DNA from: Wallemia ichthyophaga EXF-994
Lineage: Eukaryota > Fungi > Basidiomycota
NCBI RefSeq assembly: GCF_000400465.1
Contig: NW_008806288.1
Span: forward strand, 180,001-212,000
DNA: 32,000 bases
Reading direction: 5' to 3'
The position numbers were made by a program, and so were the translations under genes. Positions 6,768 to 17,673 of the stretch are shown here, one piece after another. Each line of letters starts with the position of its first letter. The first letter of the stretch is position 1. A model generated the notes under the pieces. That model was not told where the DNA came from. It ran no database searches and saw only the letters and a program-made list of their open reading frames with translations.

Positions 6768-9700
6768 ATGATAAACAATCTAATTGGAAGACCTTCAGAG
6801 CAATGGAGGAGAACGCAGGCAAGTCGCAGCTTTCGTCTCGTAAACCCGAAATTCTCATTATCTCTGTGAAGGTTGTACTCGTCATACTGTTTTGGCTGTG
6901 GAGATTACTCAAAGGAGATAAGAACGGCTTAAGATTTTGGTACATAAAATCAATAAATAGACGCTTAAGTGGGTAGCTGGGATTTTTTCTCTAGTTCGCC
7001 TCTCATCCAGATTACGCCTAGAACGATTCACACCTTATCAACTGATCGTCGCAACACTCACATCACTTTACGCAATCAGGCACTTTGATGCTTTATTAGG
7101 CTTACAGGGTGTGTATTGATTAGTATGACGTGTTTTGTACTCAATCCACATTCTTCAGCCCCTGAACCACTCGCACACCTCTATTCAAGATCATATTACA
7201 GAGCAACTTGGATATCAAATGCTCTGGACGCTGGTTTCGCAACAGCCATGTCTATCCATAAGCCTAAGTGGCTCAAGGACTTGGCAGGTCCCGTGTTTGG
7301 ATTATATTACCTTATATGGACAGAACAGGCTGAGGAAAAGGTGCGCGTCATGTGATTACATAGCCTTTCCGACTAAACTATCCTCAAAGCTGCTCAAATT
7401 CAGAGCTACTTGCACAGTAGAGTTTCTTAGAAGCACAGGAGAGAAACTATCAAATCCATATGTCGGTGCAACCATATAACTATATCTTCTAACATTCTCT
7501 CCAGATACGCGCTGCAACGATTCTTGCAAGACCAAGATGCAACTTGGTTCGCGAAATATTGTTGCCAAGACCAAAATCATCCAAGTATACCAAACCAATT
7601 TCCTGCTTGATGTTGTTCAACGGCACAAAAGAAGAATTGTCATGCTGTACAGAGCTCGTCATTGATTTCCCAGGTGGCGCGTTTGTTTTTATGACCCCAC
7701 GCGATCATGAAGAAAGATTAAGGTGGTGGGCAAAAGAAGGCAAGAAGAAGGTCGTCTTGAGCGTCAATTACATTAAAAGTCCTGAATGTGAGCGTGTAGT
7801 TGTTTATTGGTGATTCCTGCTAATTTCAATCAAGATCCTTTCCCATGGGCTATCGATGAAGCTTTTGATTTATACAAGATCATACTAGAGACGAACGGTC
7901 GCTTACTTGATATGAAAAGTGAGACGCTTAACATTCTCTTGGCTGGGGACTCCGCTGGTGGAAATGTGAGAGACTGATTTTTACTTTCGTTGTCTAACAT
8001 GGGTCAGATCGTCACTGCTGTTATGTTTAAGGTAAAGAACGGCTAATAATCTGCAGTTAGGCTAACAAATGGCAGATATTAGAATCTGAAGTACAGCTCA
8101 AGCATCCAGTTGGAATAGTGCTGACATATCCAGCATTAGACTTCAGTAGGTCTTTGCAATAAACAAAAACTCCGTCTAACAGTCAACAGACTTCACCAGT
8201 TGGATGAGTGATGAAAATCTTGAAGTACTTAGAACCGAGCAATCCTCTGCAAGTTTAGCTTCCTTATTCGAGTCCAAGGACCACCTAGCCCATAAATCAC
8301 CCTTATCAATAACGTGTGACATTCCTAGCAATAAAAATATTAAACGGCAAAAGAGCTGGTCTGATCATTTATCTCACTGGGCATCTTCCACCTCCTTATC
8401 AAAGCTAGGTGCTCCTTCACCAAAGATACCTTACAGTGCAGGTGCGCAAATAGCATCAGCAGCAGCAATGCAAACCTCTTCCAAGTCAACAACATCTCTC
8501 AAAGATACGACCACCTCACCTCGCAGGAGAAGAGTGTTGTCGTTCGCTGACAGTCCACCCAAGCTCAATTTTGAGGTTGATGAGCAGGAAGTGTTGGGTA
8601 TAGCTGTAAATGATGATGTATCAGAGGAAAGGGACAGGGACTGCAGGGTTGAATCTGAGAAACCACTGTACGAGAGAGTGATCGCCGAGCCTGACGAACA
8701 TGTAAGAAAGGAGCTGCAGAAGGAGCTTGAAAGGGAGCATATGGAAGCCAACAAACGCATCAACAACAAGAAGAAAGCTCCTATAGGTACACGCCTAACA
8801 ATGACTAGCAGAACTGGCTTCTTTAATGACAGGTGGGTGAGATTCAACAGACAAAGACACTCACTCTAACGCCCAGTTTATAGAATTATTCCACCCTCAG
8901 TTATGAGAGCGTGTGCTTTGCTTTACATTGGACCAAAGAACAGGCCAGACTTTAAGAAAGATTACTATCTCTCCCCCATTTTAGCACCGTCGTATCTCCT
9001 TGAACAATTTCCAACCACTTTGATTGTTTGCGGGTGGGTTTTAGAATCTTAGGTTGTTCAACTACTGACGGAAAACCAGTGAACGCGATCCTTTCGTCGA
9101 TGACTCACTAATTTTCGCTGGACGGCTTCGCAAGGCTAAGCTGGCACGTCAGTCGGCAGCTTTACAAGAGCAGGCCAACTACGAAAATTCCACTGAAGTT
9201 AGAACCCCTACTGGTGGATTAGGTTTAGGAATCGCAGACATTAAAGACAACTACGTCGAGGATCCCATCGTTCACGAAGATGAGGATGACTGGGTGCACT
9301 TAAGAATTATTGAGGGTGTGTCATATTAAACATGCACGAATTAACTGACACTTTCCAGGCATGAGCCACGGGTTCCTTCAAATGACTGGAGTTGTCAGCG
9401 AGTCTCTGTTGATTATCAAAAAGTTAAACCAATGGATCGAAGGTGTGTTCTGCTAAGGTTGAAGCTTATATCTAACGGTATTCAGAATCATTCCTCAACG
9501 CAATTGAGAAGGTGAACGCTAGTAGAGAGAGGGACGAAGAGCTCGAAAAGCAAGCAAAGGAAGAACAATCAGGAAAACCTGTACAAAGCAACCACAAGCA
9601 TTCAGAAAGTGAATACGAGTTAAGTGAGCCGCTAGTATTTTCCACTAAGAAATCAGCGACGCCTTCCATGTTGTCAGAACCAGCTACGCAAATACACACA

Positions 9701-9985
9701 CCGATGGGCGAGACCTTCTCCCATGATCAACCACCACCACAGGCTAAACCCAAACAAATCCGCACCCAATCCACTCCGCCTGCACAGCTCCCCCTCAAGT
9801 CAAACAACCTGGACCATCGCGGAAAGAGCTTTGAGAAGGATAAAAAGAATAAGGAAGACATGAATAGCATTCTGTTGAGTGAGGCTGAGGTTATGAGGAG
9901 AAGACGTATCGAGGCTGTAATGGGGATGGGTGAGACTGGGTCAGCTAATATATCAAGTGATGAAGACGAAACGAGTAATGGGTAA
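6768..9985 (+). CDS. Hormone-sensitive-lipase-like alpha/beta hydrolase (abhydrolase_3 type) with N-terminal membrane segments
   Basis: MINNLIGRPSEQWRRTQ, then APEPLAHLYSRSYYRATW, IDFPGGAFV (oxyanion region), YPFPWAIDEAFD, LAGDSAGGN (nucleophile elbow) and HGFLQM. Many introns, including a predicted GC-AG intron at 6819-6871. Confidence 0.86.
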
Positions 9986-12004: not shown

Positions 12005-12052
12005 TGATGATGATGATGATGAAATTTGAATATGTTGTTTAAGACGATACAT
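12005..12052 (-). mobile_element. Extremely 5'-truncated non-LTR retrotransposon 3'-end remnant (R1) with (TCA)n tail
   Basis: (TGA)6 at 12005-12022 on the plus strand, followed by AATTTGAATATGTTGTTTAAGACGATACAT, which aligns with the terminus of element E2 (AATATAATATATAGTTAAAGCGATACAT). Confidence 0.6.
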
Positions 12053-12059
12053 TCTTAAA

Positions 12060-12709
12060 TAGATAGATAGAAATCATATTATATATTCAAAAGCGTTACA
12101 ACGATTAATAATCTTCGCTTATCTATACTTCTTTTGCATTGAAAGCTGACGATTGTAGTGACTCAAATGCATGCGGTTCTTGGCATGTGTGCCGTAAATC
12201 AGGAGGAAGCTAAGTGGAGCTACCGGAGACGCGCGGGTGGGTGCTAAAATAGTTTTTGAAAAACTCGTAGAGAGCTTTAAGAGCGTCTTCAATTGAAGCA
12301 TATATTTCATCTCGAACCTTAAAAACCCTAATCCATAAATCCTCCTCAACGATAATCTTGCTTGGTCGAACTTCCTACATCTGAAAATCATATGTGTGAT
12401 AATGTCTACTTCACTGCACTTGCTGTAAAGTGGTGAGTCGGACAGTTTGAATCGGAATCGGTAAGACTTGGCAGTAGGGAAGTGGCTTGAGCAGATCTGT
12501 GTGGCCACACTTCGCATACCACGGGGAAGATTGCTGAGCATCTTGTCCGCCTGAGTAGAAGTCTTCCTGCAAAATGCTCTCTCCGCGTCTTTCGACGTTG
12601 GTCCTGGCAAACTACGCGCATTTACTCTCAAGAGAGCAGTGTGTCGCTCCCGCAGGCGTCTACGGAAAGCGGAGGGAGCCGGTTTGAGGGTGAAGTTTAA
12701 AGAGATCCT
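12060..12709 (-). mobile_element. Degenerate 5'-truncated non-LTR retrotransposon (E1): ORF2 C-terminus plus 3' UTR with (TCTA)3 tail
   Basis: Translation ISLNFTLKPAPSAFRRRLRE...LPRGMRSVATQICSSHFPTAKSYRFRFKLSDS...KC...HMIFRC aligns with E2. The terminus shares TATCTATACTTCTT with E2. Possible 10-bp TSD with one mismatch: ATTCTTAAAT (12051-12060) / ATTCTAAAAT (12710-12719). Confidence 0.87.
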
Positions 12710-12915
12710 ATTCTAAAATTACGCCCACCAATACTTAAAGCAAGAGAAGTCAAAGGGTGTGCAGAATTACAGGAAGCGTTTCTTGACAAGTTTCGTAAAT
12801 TGTAAGTTTTTGGCGGATTTCTTTTACGCTAGACAGCCTCTTCTTAATTTTATAGCTAACAAAGGGTTTTATGAAGACATGCGAATTAGATGTACATGAG
12901 CTTAGGCTTGTTCGT

Positions 12916-12998
12916 GTCGATGTAGCTCAATTGGCGAGAGCGTACGACTGAAGTTTATAGCATTCGTAAGGTTGGGCGTTCGATTCGCCCCATCGACA
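12916..12998 (+). tRNA. tRNA-Phe(GAA) with ~9-nt intron
   Basis: Cloverleaf: acceptor stem GTCGATG/CATCGAC, D stem GCTC/GAGC, anticodon stem TACGA/TCGTA around CT-GAA-G, T arm GGGCG-TTCGATT-CGCCC. Confidence 0.96.
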
Positions 12999-13003
12999 TT
13001 TTT
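12999..13003 (+). terminator. RNA polymerase III T5 terminator
   Basis: TTTTT immediately after the tRNA-Phe discriminator base. Confidence 0.8.
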
Positions 13004-13226
13004 GGCATTTTGCGATTCTTTTGTTACAAAATTTTCTCCTCATTCTGAGTTTGTATAGTTTATAGACTGATGTATTTTTCTGCAGAATGCCTCTGATTCT
13101 TGTCTTCTGTATCGCTAATGCGGTCTAGTCGTGCAAAAGTTTCCAATTTCAGTCTCGCTTTTAGACACGCTTGCAGCTTACAAACCATCTACAATAATCA
13201 ATACTGCCTATTTAATCTGCAAACGA

Positions 13227-13735
13227 CTAAGTAAGTGAGAAGGCGAACGCAGAAATACCGTATACTGACAATTTGAAGAATTTAGCAAGAATTTCATTTT
13301 CGTAGGATCTCCAGTATTTAGAATTCATCGTTATGTCAACTCTCCGCTTAATATCCATAGAGTTGGATTTCTCCTTGACCATGTATCTTATCTCGAATGG
13401 CTGAGCACGAGATTCGACGATCGTGAAGTAAAAAGGCTCGACAAATAGCCCTGAATAAATTCTATAAAATTTCACCAGAATTATATCACTTAGCTACCAA
13501 TTGCGTCCGGTAGGCTGTTCGGAAGTTGGAATCAAACATCACTTTGGAGTACGCTATAGGATGGATATGGAGACTTTTACCCAATTCATGAGTAAAACCA
13601 AAAAATTCTGACTTGATAAATCCCAAAGTTTCGGCTATATAAACGCGATTTACTTATTCCGACACGTAGCGTCTACAGGACTCAATGCTGGGTCCAAGGA
13701 AAAAGTATTGTCCTTCCGGATAAATAAACGCCTAA
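13227..13735 (-). other. Possible orphan or decayed spliced gene in an AT-rich segment
   Basis: Three consecutive open stretches: AFIYPEGQYFFLGPSIES, ETLGFIKSEFFGFTHELGKSLHIHPIAY and IYSGLFVEPFYFTIVESRAQPFEIRY...FFKL. They are separated by intron-like gaps, but I could not build a clean model with a start codon. Confidence 0.2.
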
Positions 13736-14465
13736 AAATGCAATACAAGTAAAATAATGGGGGTTCAGCCCAACTCTGAAATCGGTGATTTGGCTTCACT
13801 ATATGCATTTCGCAGGATCAGTTCATGAGATATCAAAGGAATTCAAATGAGATCGGCTTTGATTTGCATCACAACTATTGAATGCTTCACCGTATTTTTT
13901 GTGCTCAAACTACTCCATTGATTGATTAGATGATTTTCATAGGCTCCTTATTCCACGACTCTTGGTAGGGAATGATTGAATGTGTTAGAGGTGATTTTAA
14001 TCGTTTGAATCTTATTTGCATTCTTCATTTTAAGTTATCTACTTCTAACCATTTGCAAGTGACAAAGTTCATGGTGATCAGTTGCGTGCCGGAAAACTAA
14101 ATAATGTGAGTAGAGGAGCAGCCGAGGATGTCTCGCTATATTCAATCTCAAAGTACTTTATAATTACTTTTATCTGGCAAATAATTTTTCATAATAGATC
14201 ACATCTAATGATGACTAGAGAAGGCTCAACAACATTAAGGAGATTATTACATCATCTAATCTTCTACACGTCTAATCGTTAAATAAATATATATTAAGAT
14301 AGCTGATTTTTGTATTCGTCACGGATAAATGACTCAATTCTCATTGAGCACGTGGTTTGGTGACATTAGATTGCACCAAAAACATATCGCCAAAACTTGT
14401 AGAACCGTAAAGACTTGATTGCAGAGTTTGCTAAAAGAAGTAAGTTGGTTCTGAGACTTCCAGTC

Positions 14466-14470
14466 AAAAA
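14466..14470 (-). terminator. RNA polymerase III T5 terminator of tRNA-Ile
   Basis: The minus strand reads TTGTTTTT after the tRNA 3' end. Confidence 0.75.
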
Positions 14471-14473
14471 CAA

Positions 14474-14554
14474 TGGTCCCTGCAGGGCTCGAACCTGCGA
14501 CTTTGGAGTGATCTAATATTAGCTCCACACTCTAACCAACTGAGTTAAGAGACC
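14474..14554 (-). tRNA. tRNA-Ile(AAT) with 7-nt intron
   Basis: Minus strand: GGTCTCT-TA-ACTC-AGTTGGTTA-GAGT-G-TGGAG-CT-AAT-A-[TTAGATC]-A-CTCCA-AAGTC-GCAGG-TTCGAGC-CCTGC-AGGGACC-A. Confidence 0.95.
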
Positions 14555-14576
14555 GATAGGTTTATCATGAATGTCA

Positions 14577-14606
14577 ACATAATGATTCTGACATAATGAT
14601 TCTGAC
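14577..14606. repeat. Perfect 14-bp tandem duplication (ACATAATGATTCTG)x2
   Basis: Copies at 14577-14590 and 14591-14604, plus AC. Starts 22 bp upstream of tRNA-Ile. Confidence 0.9.
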
Positions 14607-14643
14607 ACATTGATTTGACTTAAATTTCACAGCACAAGTGCGC

Positions 14644-14663
14644 TTTTTTTTTTTTTTTTTTTT
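14644..14663. repeat. T20 homopolymer
   Basis: Twenty consecutive T, followed by ATAGAGA and the ATG at 14671. Confidence 0.95.
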
Positions 14664-14670
14664 ATAGAGA

Positions 14671-15885
14671 ATGGACGATCATTATCGAAAATCGGCTGGT
14701 TTGCTGGAGTGTCATCAAAGTCCTCCTAGTGAATCCTCAAGCGCCGCATTTTATGGGAAGCACCTTTTAAACGATATATTGCTTGATATTAGTATTGAAG
14801 ACCCACGCGAAAACCTCACTGAATCGCAAGACGGGAGGAGACAGAGCCCAAGGCTCAATAATAATTTAAACAAAAGGCGAATAACCAGTACTGATGCTTA
14901 TACAGGTCGTCCCCCTACACCTACGGTAAGGGAGCAAAACTCCAAGGCGCTGGAGCAAGCCCTCGAAAAGTTCAAATTAGAGGTGACAGACACATTGAGA
15001 GAGTGTCTACGTGAGTAACAGGACAATTACGCCAAATCTTTCAAGGAGACGACACTGGCACTCGAGCAGCAAATACACGAATTAAAGAAGCAAAACGTAG
15101 CGCCACAACTTATGCATGCAGCACCATCGTATGCACAAAAGCAGCTGCAGAAACACCAATGGTACCGTCAAAAAAGGCGATCACGCTCAAACTTCATCAA
15201 GCCGACCCAGCCAAGCCAGTGCTGAGTGATAATGATTTAAAGTCGGTCGATATTAATAGAGTAATGGACGAACACATACCAAAGACGTTCGGCGACCGAC
15301 TTAATATCACGGAAAACTTCATTAGCACCGCCAAACGTCTCCCCACAAACTCCTTCAAACAACAAGCGTAAGACTCAAAGATAGCCATGGAGCTTAGAAA
15401 TTGCGAGGAGTGGATCCCCCAAGGACTACGCCCTCACGTATTGACTCAAGAAGTGGCAGTTTTGAGAGTACCCACCACCAGCAACCCATCCGTCATTGCC
15501 AAACAGATGAAAGCAGAAAACATGATTTGGGAAAACAAGGTTATATACGCGATGTGGGCCAATATATCCGCGAAGAAACAACAGTTCGCTACGCTAAAGG
15601 TGCAGCTAAACAACATCAACGCCGCCAAAGCTAGCTTATCCCTGAATGTTGGTTATAGCGGAGAAATGATGAGAGTAGAACCAGCGAACCTCATTCCGGG
15701 ACAATGCCTAAAATGTTGAAAATTGAGACACACCCAAAAAGTATGCAGATCACCACCTTGTTGCCTGAGATGCCCAGAGGAACACGAGACAGCGAAGTGT
15801 ACAAAAGCACCATGTGCAAAGTCCGAAGCAGGGGCGCGCGGAGTAGCGTGTACACAGCTCAACACATGCACACACAACATCACTC
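14671..15885 (+). mobile_element. Decayed ORF1 (gag-like) of a non-LTR retrotransposon (E3), ORF2 absent
   Basis: Coiled coil, then APSYAQK-AAA (across a frameshift near 15135), VAVLRVP, and zinc knuckles QCLKCxKLRHTQKVC and CLRCPEEHETAKC. In-frame stops at 15016-15018, 15369-15371 and 15717-15719. The 5' boundary is uncertain. Confidence 0.82.
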
Positions 15886-15886
15886 T

Positions 15887-16003
15887 AAATATATTGTCAA
15901 GAATAAACATATTTAAAACTGCGTTCATCAGTACTTCTTAAAGCATGAGGAGTGAACGGGTGTTCAGAATCACTGAAAGCGTTTCTTAGACTAGTGTCGT
16001 AAA
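15887..16003 (-). mobile_element. Old 3'-UTR remnant (R2) of the same non-LTR family, tail lost
   Basis: AATATATTGTCAAGAATAAACATATTTAAAACTGCGTTCATCAGTACTTCTTA aligns with E2's AATATATAGTTAAAGCGATACATAGTAAAACTGCGCCTATCTATACTTCTTA. AGCGTTTCT...CGTAAA follows at similar spacing in both (37 vs 40 nt). Confidence 0.65.
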
Positions 16004-17397
16004 CTATAAATTCTTGGTGATGATGATGATGATGATGAAATATAATATATAGTTAAAGCGATACATAGTAAAACTGCGCCTATCTATACTTCTTATGTTG
16101 CTATTTGGACTTGTGTGACGTTGATTTGAGAGTATAGCGTTTCTGTGCTGAGCGTAAAGGTTTAGATTTACTCGATCCGACCGATGGCTGTACCGAGAAC
16201 CCGGAATTGTGCGAGTTTTGGTTAGGCTGTTGTGGTGTGTCGAACTAGTGTACCGAAATCAATAAAAATGAGAGGGTGGGTGGGCCTGAAGGGGGAAAAG
16301 CCTGAATGGCACCCGAAAGTACCACTCCGCGTAAAACCCTCTGCAGTTTGTGTGCTCTACAGAAGTCGGTGAGAATGGGAGATTTGTGGCTTGAAGAATT
16401 CGTATAGCGCTTGGAGAGATTTGGCGTTTCTCAGCATAGGTCCCAATTCGAACCTAATACCGAGAGCGAGAATCTTCCTTCTCAAAGCTATTCTCGCCAT
16501 GATGTGTCTTGAGCAGATGAAGATACGGTGTGGGATAGTGTCGTCTAATCGACAGGTGCTGCACTTGGCAGAATCAGTGAGCTTAAAGCGATAGCGATAG
16601 GACTTAGTGGTAGGGAAGTGTCCAGAGCGGAGCTGTGTTGCTAGACAGCGAGTGGCCCGGGGCACACTTTCCAACAGCTTGGCGGTCTTGATGGAGCTGA
16701 GATTGCCTTTGGCGGTTCTTGCTGTTCTTGAGGTGAGACCCGTGAGAGTGTTGCCCTCCACGCGCATGGGTGCAGTGAGGGTTTCGTGGAGGTTTCGCCG
16801 GGTAACAGAGCAGGAGGTTCGGAGTTCTATATCCAGAACAAAACCGTTTCCGTGGTTTGCTCTGCCTTTGTTCGCGGCGCGGTCTGCTCTCTCGTTGCCT
16901 TCAATTCCCTTGTGGCCAGGTATCCAGTGAAAGTTGAATTGGGTGTCTGGGTGAAGCGCCTTCATGTCCGTTAACTTCGTGAGTATACTCTTCAGGATGT
17001 ATTGGGCTGGGCCGTGCAGTGTGCATGATCTTAGGGCTTTCAGTGTCGCTTGGCTGTCCGAGTAGATGTGGATGTTTGGTGGTGCCGTTAATTGAGAAGA
17101 GTCGATTGCCTCTTGGACGTTGAGAACAGCACTGTATAGCGCAACGAGTTCAGCTTCGTATATTCCAAATCTGTGTGTTGAGCCAAGGTAGTAGGAGTGG
17201 CCGCTCCAACTGTTCGAGACTTGATTGTAGGCGACGATGCCGAGGGCTACTGCACCTTCTGCCAGAGAGCCGTCAGTGTAGATGTGCCAGGCTGGAGCAG
17301 GGGACTTGGTTATTTTGTCATGTGCTTCACGTGCAGTAGTCTCGTTTTCAGGAATTGAGATTGATAAGTCGATTGAGTGCTATAAATTCTTGGTGAT
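16004..17397. repeat. Target-site duplication CTATAAATTCTTGGTGAT (16004-16021 and 17380-17397)
   Basis: Exact 18-bp match. Its last 4 nt (TGAT) overlap the tail repeat. Confidence 0.93.
16018..17379 (-). mobile_element. Young 5'-truncated non-LTR retrotransposon (E2; Tad/I-group-like): RNase H, CCHC knuckle, ~335-bp 3' UTR and (TCA)7 tail
   Basis: Uninterrupted frame 17379-16357 (341 codons) with IYTDGS, IYEAELVAL, IYSDSQATLKAL, WIPGHKGIEGNERAD and CSTC-x7-H-x4-C. (TGA)7 at 16018-16038 on the plus strand. Flanked by an exact 18-bp direct repeat. Confidence 0.95.
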
Positions 17398-17584
17398 TCT
17401 CCATTACGCCAAACCACCGGAGTCTTTGGTTTGTAGTCAATTGCGGCTTGAAAAACTCGTAAAGGGCTTTTGGAGTTTTTTCTGATTTTTTATCCTAGTT
17501 CAAGCCGATTCCGGCCTGATGTAAATAAAAGTTTTTGTATATATGCAAGCGATATACACCACATATAATAGTCAAATTTTCGAC

Positions 17585-17667
17585 GTCGATGTAGCTCAAT
17601 TGGCGAGAGCGTACGACTGAAGTTTATAGCATTCGTAAGGTTGGGCGTTCGATTCGCCCCATCGACA
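17585..17667 (+). tRNA. tRNA-Phe(GAA) with ~9-nt intron, identical to 12916-12998
   Basis: Same cloverleaf as the first copy, 83/83 nt identical including the intron. Confidence 0.96.
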
Positions 17668-17673
17668 TTTTTT
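17668..17673 (+). terminator. RNA polymerase III T6 terminator
   Basis: TTTTTT immediately after the tRNA. Confidence 0.8.

Follow-up and report, generated by a model that had tools for sequence, protein, structure and literature searches.

The stretch of DNA analysed here, a window of 32,000 nucleotides (nt) from the salt-loving fungus Wallemia ichthyophaga EXF-994, carries three transfer RNA (tRNA) genes, each preceded by remains of retrotransposons without long terminal repeats (non-LTR), of the long interspersed nuclear element (LINE) type. Genes occupy most of the window, the genome being a compact one. The element remains were resolved into five separate insertions (O1, E1, O2, E2 and E3), each of which stands head-to-head with one of the three tRNAs, i.e. 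with the element 5′ end towards the tRNA gene (Table 1). Open reading frames (ORFs) 1 and 2 of four full-length relatives served as tblastn queries against the whole 32 kb and revealed element coding sequence at three places only, namely 12213-12712 (minus strand, E1), 15036-15887 (plus strand, ORF1 of E3) and 16363-17379 (minus strand, E2). All three matches lie upstream of a tRNA gene in the head-to-head arrangement. By our own arithmetic, the chance that five insertions in 32 kb fall within about 210 nt upstream of three tRNAs and in one orientation is roughly (3 x 210/32000 x 0.5)^5, or about 1e-10. The right part of the window matches a public read-assembly contig (L001), which begins inside the second tRNA-Phe gene, to 99.6%, and a W. 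ichthyophaga protein at NCBI shows 100% identity to the open E2 frame.

At both tRNA-Phe loci one copy is nested in an older one: E1 sits inside O1 and E2 inside O2. In the tblastn alignment E1 shows 67% protein identity to residues 1087-1249 of ORF2 of the full-length metagenome copy L009, and blastn gave nucleotide identities of 86% and 85% to L005B and L006X, respectively, two copies from other W. ichthyophaga loci. It ends in a (TCTA)3 tail at 12060-12071 and is flanked by a target-site duplication (TSD) of 10 nt with one mismatch (ATTTTAGAAT vs ATTTAAGAAT), located at -204 to -195 from the first tRNA-Phe; the distal TSD copy occupies 12051-12059. The older copy O1 has a tail of its own, (TCA)6 at 12005-12022. 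The proximal part of O1 is 77-78% identical to the 3′ untranslated regions (UTRs) of L006Y, L003A and L004A, and its 5′ end is found about 86 nt upstream of the first tRNA-Phe.

E2 retains an uninterrupted frame of 340 codons (17379-16360) that covers the RNase H and the Cys/His C-terminal part of ORF2 (Pfam RNase_H, E = 3e-13) and is 59% identical to ORF2 of L010 and 55% to that of L008. Its TSD, CTATAAATTCTTGGTGA, is perfect over 17 nt and occurs at 16004-16020 and 17380-17396, the latter corresponding to -205 to -189 from the second tRNA-Phe. The two halves of O2 on either side of E2 are parts of one older copy, which is colinear with L003A, L004A and L006Y and belongs to a family other than that of E2. 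Local alignments of the distal half with these three copies reach 15881-15884, and the proximal half shows 77-85% identity to L006Y, L004A, L003A and L005A over the region 77-202 nt upstream of the second tRNA-Phe, with the 5′ end of O2 at about 77 nt.

Table 1. Positions of tRNA genes and element copies in the window and at further W. ichthyophaga loci; distances are given in nt upstream of the tRNA or tRNA-like gene.
Locus	Feature	Position	Strand	Description
Window	O1, distal part	12005-12059	-	last ~37 nt of older B-family copy; aligns with 3′ ends/tails of L003A, L004A and L006Y
Window	E1	12060-12711	-	5′-truncated family-A copy: ORF2 C-terminus and 3′ UTR; degenerate reading frame
Window	O1, proximal part	12712-12830	-	3′-UTR fragment of older B-family copy split by E1; also repeat D3
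Window	tRNA-Phe(GAA), first	12916-12998	+	9-nt intron; ARAGORN; target of O1 and E1
Window	tRNA-Ile(AAU)	14474-14554	-	short intron; Rfam tRNA, 54.9 bits; ARAGORN -i gives Ile(AAT); target of E3
Window	run of 20 T	14644-14663		90-109 nt upstream of tRNA-Ile, before the E3 5′ end; read from the sequence
Window	E3	14671-15886	+	intact 5′ terminus and degenerate ORF1 (coiled-coil region, two CCHC knuckles); 3′-truncated
Window	O2, distal part	15884-16003	-	3′-UTR end of older B-family copy; without tail; abuts truncated E3; repeats D3 and D8
Window	distal copy of E2 TSD	16004-16020		CTATAAATTCTTGGTGA; sequence belongs to O2; perfect direct repeat D13
Window	E2	16021-17379	-	5′-truncated copy of a third family; tail (TCA)6 at 16021-16038
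Window	O2, proximal part	17380-17508	-	ORF2 end and start of 3′ UTR; holds proximal TSD copy 17380-17396; repeat D2
Window	tRNA-Phe(GAA), second	17585-17667	+	9-nt intron; ARAGORN; target of O2 and E2
L003	tRNA-Val	9805-9907	-	L003A from 82 nt
L004	tRNA-Val	9612-9714	-	L004A from 82 nt, then E3-like ORF1 (L004B)
L004	tRNA	16002-16086	-	L004C from 90 nt
L005	tRNA-Val	13082	+	L005B (E1-like) at 198 nt; no older copy beneath
L005	tRNA-Arg-like gene			L005A at 86-101 nt
L006	tRNA-Lys	9814-9886	-	L006Y from 107 nt; L006X (E1-like, length 211 nt) splits it at 194 nt

The original prediction, made from the letters of the window alone, had counted the 5′ junctions of E1 and E2 at 206 and 205 nt from their tRNAs. 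These values are correct as counted, but codon homology puts the end of E1 at 12711/12712, i.e. at 204 nt. The (TCA)6 run at 12005-12022, which had been assigned to E1, was rejected as its tail and belongs to O1. The claim that E1 and E2 are independent insertions was supported, with different families (67% identity to L009 ORF2 and 59% to L010 ORF2), different tails and TSDs, and flanks that are not homologous. The possibility that both Phe loci derive from one duplicated ancestral insertion, named in the same prediction as a finding that would overturn it, is excluded, the loci sharing only the tRNA and element-derived sequence. A segmental duplication of the Phe loci was likewise rejected on the grounds of non-homologous flanks and the different truncation points of the older copies.

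Two further details were observed. The 5′ truncation points of the family-A copies E1 (12060-12711) and L005B (L005, 12232-12883), which are 86-90% identical, are at most 2 nt apart, at different tRNAs and in unrelated flanks; this shared point could be a truncation hot spot, or a derivative of about 650 nt could itself have been mobilised. At its end the target of E2 carries TGA in the phase of the tail, a hint of priming through microhomology at this site.

The third tRNA of the window, tRNA-Ile, is the target of E3, the first base of which lies 116 nt upstream of the gene. E3 is 42% identical to the ORF1s of L009 and L010 (tblastn) and 89.5% identical at the nucleotide level to L004B, and contains stops and frameshifts. 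Its 3′ side is cut off exactly where O2 starts (15884-15887). Twin priming or inversion as an origin of E3 (plus strand) abutting O2 (minus strand) was considered and rejected by our own reasoning, since a tail meets a truncated body here, which is the wrong geometry. Both ORF1 fragments, E3 and L004B, are 3′-truncated, which is unusual for LINEs. L004B ends at L004 11388, 82-83 nt upstream of an opposing tRNA-Ala and thus at the usual insertion distance. The 3′ truncations of E3 and L004B may reflect insertion-associated deletions.

With the intact terminus of E3, six full-length 5′ ends could be compared (window 14671; L004 10703; L009 521; L010 89; L021 302; L023 37). Homology among them starts exactly at the ATG of ORF1, and the flanks differ right up to this codon; therefore, the elements do not possess a 5′ UTR. 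Of the first 70 nt, 41 are invariant across the six ends, while the compared ORF1 proteins are only 36-46% identical. As the first 70 nt are far more conserved than the proteins, an internal signal acting at the nucleotide level is probably located at the element 5′ end.

The architecture of the elements can be read from near-complete or full-length metagenome copies (L007, L009 and L010), which have two reading frames. ORF1 comprises 480-530 amino acids with CCHC knuckles, and the motifs CX2CX4HX4C and CX2CX3HX4C occur in E3, L009 and L010. ORF2 of L007, L009 and L010 comprises 1253-1283 amino acids with the Pfam domains Exo_endo_phos_2, RVT_1 and RNase_H and a conserved Cys/His C-terminal domain; E1 and E2 align to the C-terminal parts of these full-length ORF2s. 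An ORF2 with an apurinic/apyrimidinic (APE)-type endonuclease and a reverse transcriptase (RT) characterises the elements as LINEs, and variable 5′ truncation, 3′ tails and TSDs of 10-17 nt are in accordance with target-primed reverse transcription. The families differ by 34-67% in the ORF2 C-terminus, and the tails found among them are (TCTA)n in family A and, further, (TCA)n, (TAC)n, (TTCA)n and (TCAG)n, the last four read at L007 4503-4522, L008 3993-4003, L010 5550-5570 and L011 5938-5950. Outside Wallemia the best ORF2 matches reach 24-33% identity and are mostly unnamed or from ascomycetes. The host genes beside related copies in L011 are those of W. mellicola, and the lineage therefore occurs in at least two Wallemia species. 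Both the ORF2 order APE-RT-RNase H and the Cys/His knuckles of ORF1 are found in the Tad1 clade, and by its architecture the lineage would be placed as Tad1-like.

To see the arrangement beyond the window, we turned to four W. ichthyophaga loci from three other assemblies, which were retrieved with the element-encoded proteins as the sole bait. At all four (4/4), a tRNA or tRNA-like gene lies directly upstream of the element and head-to-head with it (Table 1). The insertion of L006X into L006Y is marked by a perfect TSD of 13 nt, TTAAGTCCAACGC, at -194 to -182. A search for ORF1 homologues gave four matches, in short contigs only. In one of them, the metagenome contig L021, ORF1 is intact and ORF2 extends over at least 559 codons, both being open; the element starts 92 nt upstream of a tRNA-Leu, with which it is head-to-head. 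The same tRNA-Leu junction is present in a second assembly (L022).

Taking the W. ichthyophaga loci and L021 together, all insertions (14/14) at 10 tRNA or tRNA-like genes are oriented head-to-head. The targets are Phe (two), Ile, Val (three), Lys, Leu, one tRNA of the Gly/Gln type and one tRNA-Arg-like gene, so that adjacency to tRNAs of different acceptor types is combined with a defined distance window and orientation, as in tRNA-targeted elements. The 5′ junctions lie either at 77-116 nt (nine copies) or at 194-205 nt (four copies), the fourteenth insertion being the displaced copy L004B. The near class consists of seven B-family copies (77-107 nt), which have seven different truncation points, and of two intact 5′ ends (E3 at 116 nt and L021 at 92 nt). 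The far class is made up of E2 and the three copies of family A; their TSDs cover -182 to -206. Of these four, three are nested and entered their host copies at about 55, 120 and 530 nt from the host 3′ end; the fourth has no host. Since the points of entry into the host differ at the same distance from the tRNA, it is the tRNA distance that is constant and not the host sequence.

From these observations we conclude that the window very probably contains five independent insertions of a Wallemia-specific, autonomous LINE lineage, the integration of which is directed upstream of tRNA genes that RNA polymerase III (Pol III) transcribes. The original prediction had proposed an orientation-specific, tRNA-directed non-LTR family with RNase H in a compact fungal genome and had stated that all recognisable retroelement sequence lies upstream of tRNAs with its 5′ end facing them. 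The latter was borne out by the tblastn survey of the 32 kb, and the former gains support from the same head-to-head layout at the loci of other assemblies. In place of a single retrotransposon family, several families are involved. The proposed spacing of about 205 nt is real, but it represents one of two classes, the other being at about 77-116 nt, and each Phe locus holds nested insertions.

Several points weigh against this conclusion. The sample comprises 14 insertions at 10 tRNA or tRNA-like genes from sampled loci and is not a genome-wide census, and the numbers are small from which each family appears to prefer one distance window. No convincing TSDs were found for the old B-family copies (L003A, L004A and O1), and the 5′ boundaries of the old copies are fixed only to about +/-10 nt. 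The full-length copy L009 has a 5′ flank of 520 nt without a tRNA or any other Rfam match. The W. mellicola locus L011 holds two copies in tandem, which are found 755 nt past a tRNA-Met; their nearest head-to-head tRNA is 930 nt away, the intervening DNA being unassigned. At L003 11975-12085 a 3′-UTR fragment is located about 2 kb from the nearest tRNA. A hidden Pol III gene was found neither in the L009 5′ flank nor at L011 4970-5724 with ARAGORN and a permissive Rfam search; L009 may be either truly off-target or a chimera of the assembly. A weak negative control was provided by 80 metagenome loci of distant relatives (330 kb), obtained by a protein-profile scan of metagenome contigs of the Joint Genome Institute (JGI) and at most 36% identical, in which a single tRNA was present, not upstream of the element. 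A scan of the JGI metagenome contigs for the conserved 5′ terminus gave zero matches.

As to the mechanism, an element protein (ORF1p or ORF2p) would recognise an asymmetric feature common to all tRNA genes, most likely the TFIIIB/TFIIIC/Pol III complex, and the endonuclease would then nick accessible DNA at a set distance. Since -200 is beyond the reach of TFIIIB itself, the two windows could correspond to the proximal and the distal edge of the first positioned nucleosome upstream; TFIIIB/TFIIIC or this nucleosome had also been named as possible tethers in the original prediction. We consider it probable, with more reserve than for directed integration as such, that the RNase H LINEs of Wallemia evolved the targeting of Pol III genes independently, in strict head-to-head orientation and with two discrete rulers at about -90 and about -200, which seem to be family-specific and might be the edges of the first upstream nucleosome. 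Because they have no 5′ UTR, the elements may also rely on the chromatin upstream of tRNAs for their own transcription. As a consequence of such targeting, the elements would persist in a gene-dense genome of about 10 Mb without hitting genes.

The alternative that survives best, though an improbable one, is passive retention in safe havens, according to which integration is approximately random and selection in the gene-dense haploid genome keeps only copies upstream of tRNAs. The compactness of the genome, in which genes fill most of the window, is in favour of it, as are the old, truncated and degenerate state of the majority of copies and the survival of elements away from a tRNA in L009 and L011. 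Selection does, however, not explain the strict head-to-head orientation (14/14), nor the two narrow windows with repeated hits at the same distance inside dead copies. Moreover, other intergenic DNA, e.g. 13000-14470 downstream of two tRNAs, is free of element sequence.

Lower still we rate a sequence- or self-directed nesting, in which younger families recognise a DNA motif or the older copies and merely inherit the proximity to the tRNA from the first colonist. It would agree with three of the four insertions of the -200 class being inside older B-family copies and with the A/T-rich TSDs. The three nested entries are, however, at non-homologous host positions (about 55, 120 and 530 nt) and all of them 182-206 nt from the tRNA, L005B is found at -198 without an older copy beneath, and the targeting by the first colonists is left unexplained. 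The least credible explanation, that a few ancestral insertions spread together with a duplicated tRNA and its flank or by gene conversion, can draw on the tRNA-Phe genes being identical over 88 nt (repeat D1), on a B-family fragment at both Phe loci (84% identical over 51 nt, D3) and on the 5′ ends of E1 and L005B within 2 nt, but it conflicts with the lack of homology in the 76 nt that adjoin the Phe genes and in the 100 nt downstream of them (47/500 and 274/500 shuffles, respectively, reach the observed score), with truncations of O1 and O2 more than 100 nt apart in element coordinates, with the different families, tails and TSDs of E1 and E2, and with targets (Phe, Ile, Val, Lys, Leu and others) in unrelated flanks.

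In function, the Wallemia elements come closest to TRE5-A and the other TRE5 elements of Dictyostelium discoideum, which insert 44-54 nt upstream of tRNA genes in opposite orientation, a position regarded as a safe haven (PMC5911963, PMC5006619). ORF1p of TRE5-A is thought to bind the Pol III machinery at tRNA genes (PMC5911963). Like the Wallemia elements, the TRE5 elements are autonomous non-LTR elements of a compact genome that keep a fixed distance to a variety of tRNA genes, upstream of these and in opposite orientation. TRE5 is, however, listed in the L1 clade, with an ORF2 of the APE-RT-zinc finger type that does not contain RNase H, with oligo(A) as the tail and with a structured 5′ UTR, whereas the Wallemia elements possess RNase H and microsatellite tails, lack a 5′ UTR and are inserted at distances of about 77-116 or 182-206 nt, the nearest junction being at about 77 nt. 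The resemblance is, judged by these features, convergent and not one of family membership, because of the RNase H, the lack of an oligo(A) tail, the different distances and the fungal relatives (at most 33% identity). Independently evolved tRNA targeting by non-LTR elements unrelated to the TREs is also described for NLTR-A and NLTR-B of Dictyostelium purpureum and Polysphondylium pallidum (PMC5006619). Compared by description only, these differ from the Wallemia elements in their amoebozoan hosts and in inserting about 4 or about 50 nt upstream.

Among fungal retrotransposons, Ty1 of Saccharomyces cerevisiae uses positioned nucleosomes upstream of tRNA genes, with periodic hot spots (PMC5911963). 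Ty1 and Ty3 share the targeting upstream of Pol III genes with the Wallemia elements, and a nucleosome-edge model would be compatible with the two Wallemia windows. Ty1 and Ty3 are, however, LTR elements that depend on an integrase (IN; Ty1 IN with AC40, Ty3 IN with TFIIIB) and their orientation is not fixed; the Ty1 window reaches as far as about 1 kb, and the insertion site of Ty3 is the start of transcription. LINEs of the Tad1/I group are similar to the Wallemia elements in the CCHC knuckles of ORF1, the APE-RT-RNase H order of ORF2 and a simple-repeat tail instead of poly(A). The Drosophila I factor, for example, ends in (TAA)n. For Tad1/I-group LINEs, no description of tRNA targeting was found in the literature searched. 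Zorro3 of Candida albicans, likewise a non-LTR element of a fungus, has a 5′ UTR that is very short and shows preference for a defined target (PMC7175516), but it is of the L1 type and targets poly(A) tracts instead of tRNA genes.

Reviews list tRNA-targeted non-LTR elements in dictyostelids alone (PMC5911963, PMC5006619). In the full-text literature searched, such elements were not found to be described for Wallemia or for other fungi, an absence that is not proof. The Wallemia elements thus appear to represent a second independent origin of tRNA targeting by LINEs, outside the dictyostelids, and would, if this is true, be the first tRNA-targeted non-LTR lineage described in fungi. The textbook illustration of the survival of retroelements in compact genomes is position-specific integration at tRNA genes. 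A lineage of fungal LINEs that obeys the orientation rule known from the amoebae, yet differs in its distances and in protein architecture, would provide clean evidence of convergence. Such a lineage would also offer a second system for asking whether target-primed reverse transcription is steered by the Pol III machinery, by the positions of nucleosomes or by the two together. With two distance classes in related families, a small culturable genome and many sequenced strains, this question is open to experiment. The finding further accounts for the breaking of short-read Wallemia assemblies at tRNA genes.

Some minor features of the window and of the other loci should be mentioned. Between the 3′ ends of the first tRNA-Phe and tRNA-Ile, an A/T-richer stretch of 1.5 kb (13000-14473, GC content about 0.38) contains no long ORF; it showed no similarity to the elements and a single 62-nt match to another locus (L004 607-668). 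At 14577-14604, i.e. 23-50 nt upstream of tRNA-Ile, where TFIIIB would sit, a sequence of 14 nt (ACATAATGATTCTG) stands twice in exact tandem.

The tRNA-Arg-like target in L005 (9822-9933, minus strand; W. ichthyophaga GCA_004918415.1, SPOL01000044) is permuted, i.e. the 3′ half with T arm and acceptor strand precedes the 5′ half. The two are separated by 4 nt; the matching 5′ half comprises acceptor, D arm and anticodon stem, and T runs follow. When the halves were rotated in silico, ARAGORN called a normal tRNA-Arg(ACG), while Rfam gave only a sub-threshold YrlA hit of 33 bits. It could represent a genuinely permuted gene or what remains of a rearranged tandem. An element copy lies 86-101 nt from it, head-to-head, as at ordinary tRNAs. 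At the end of the L004 contig (1-57, minus strand), the 5′ part of a U2 small nuclear RNA gene is present (Rfam, 56 bits).

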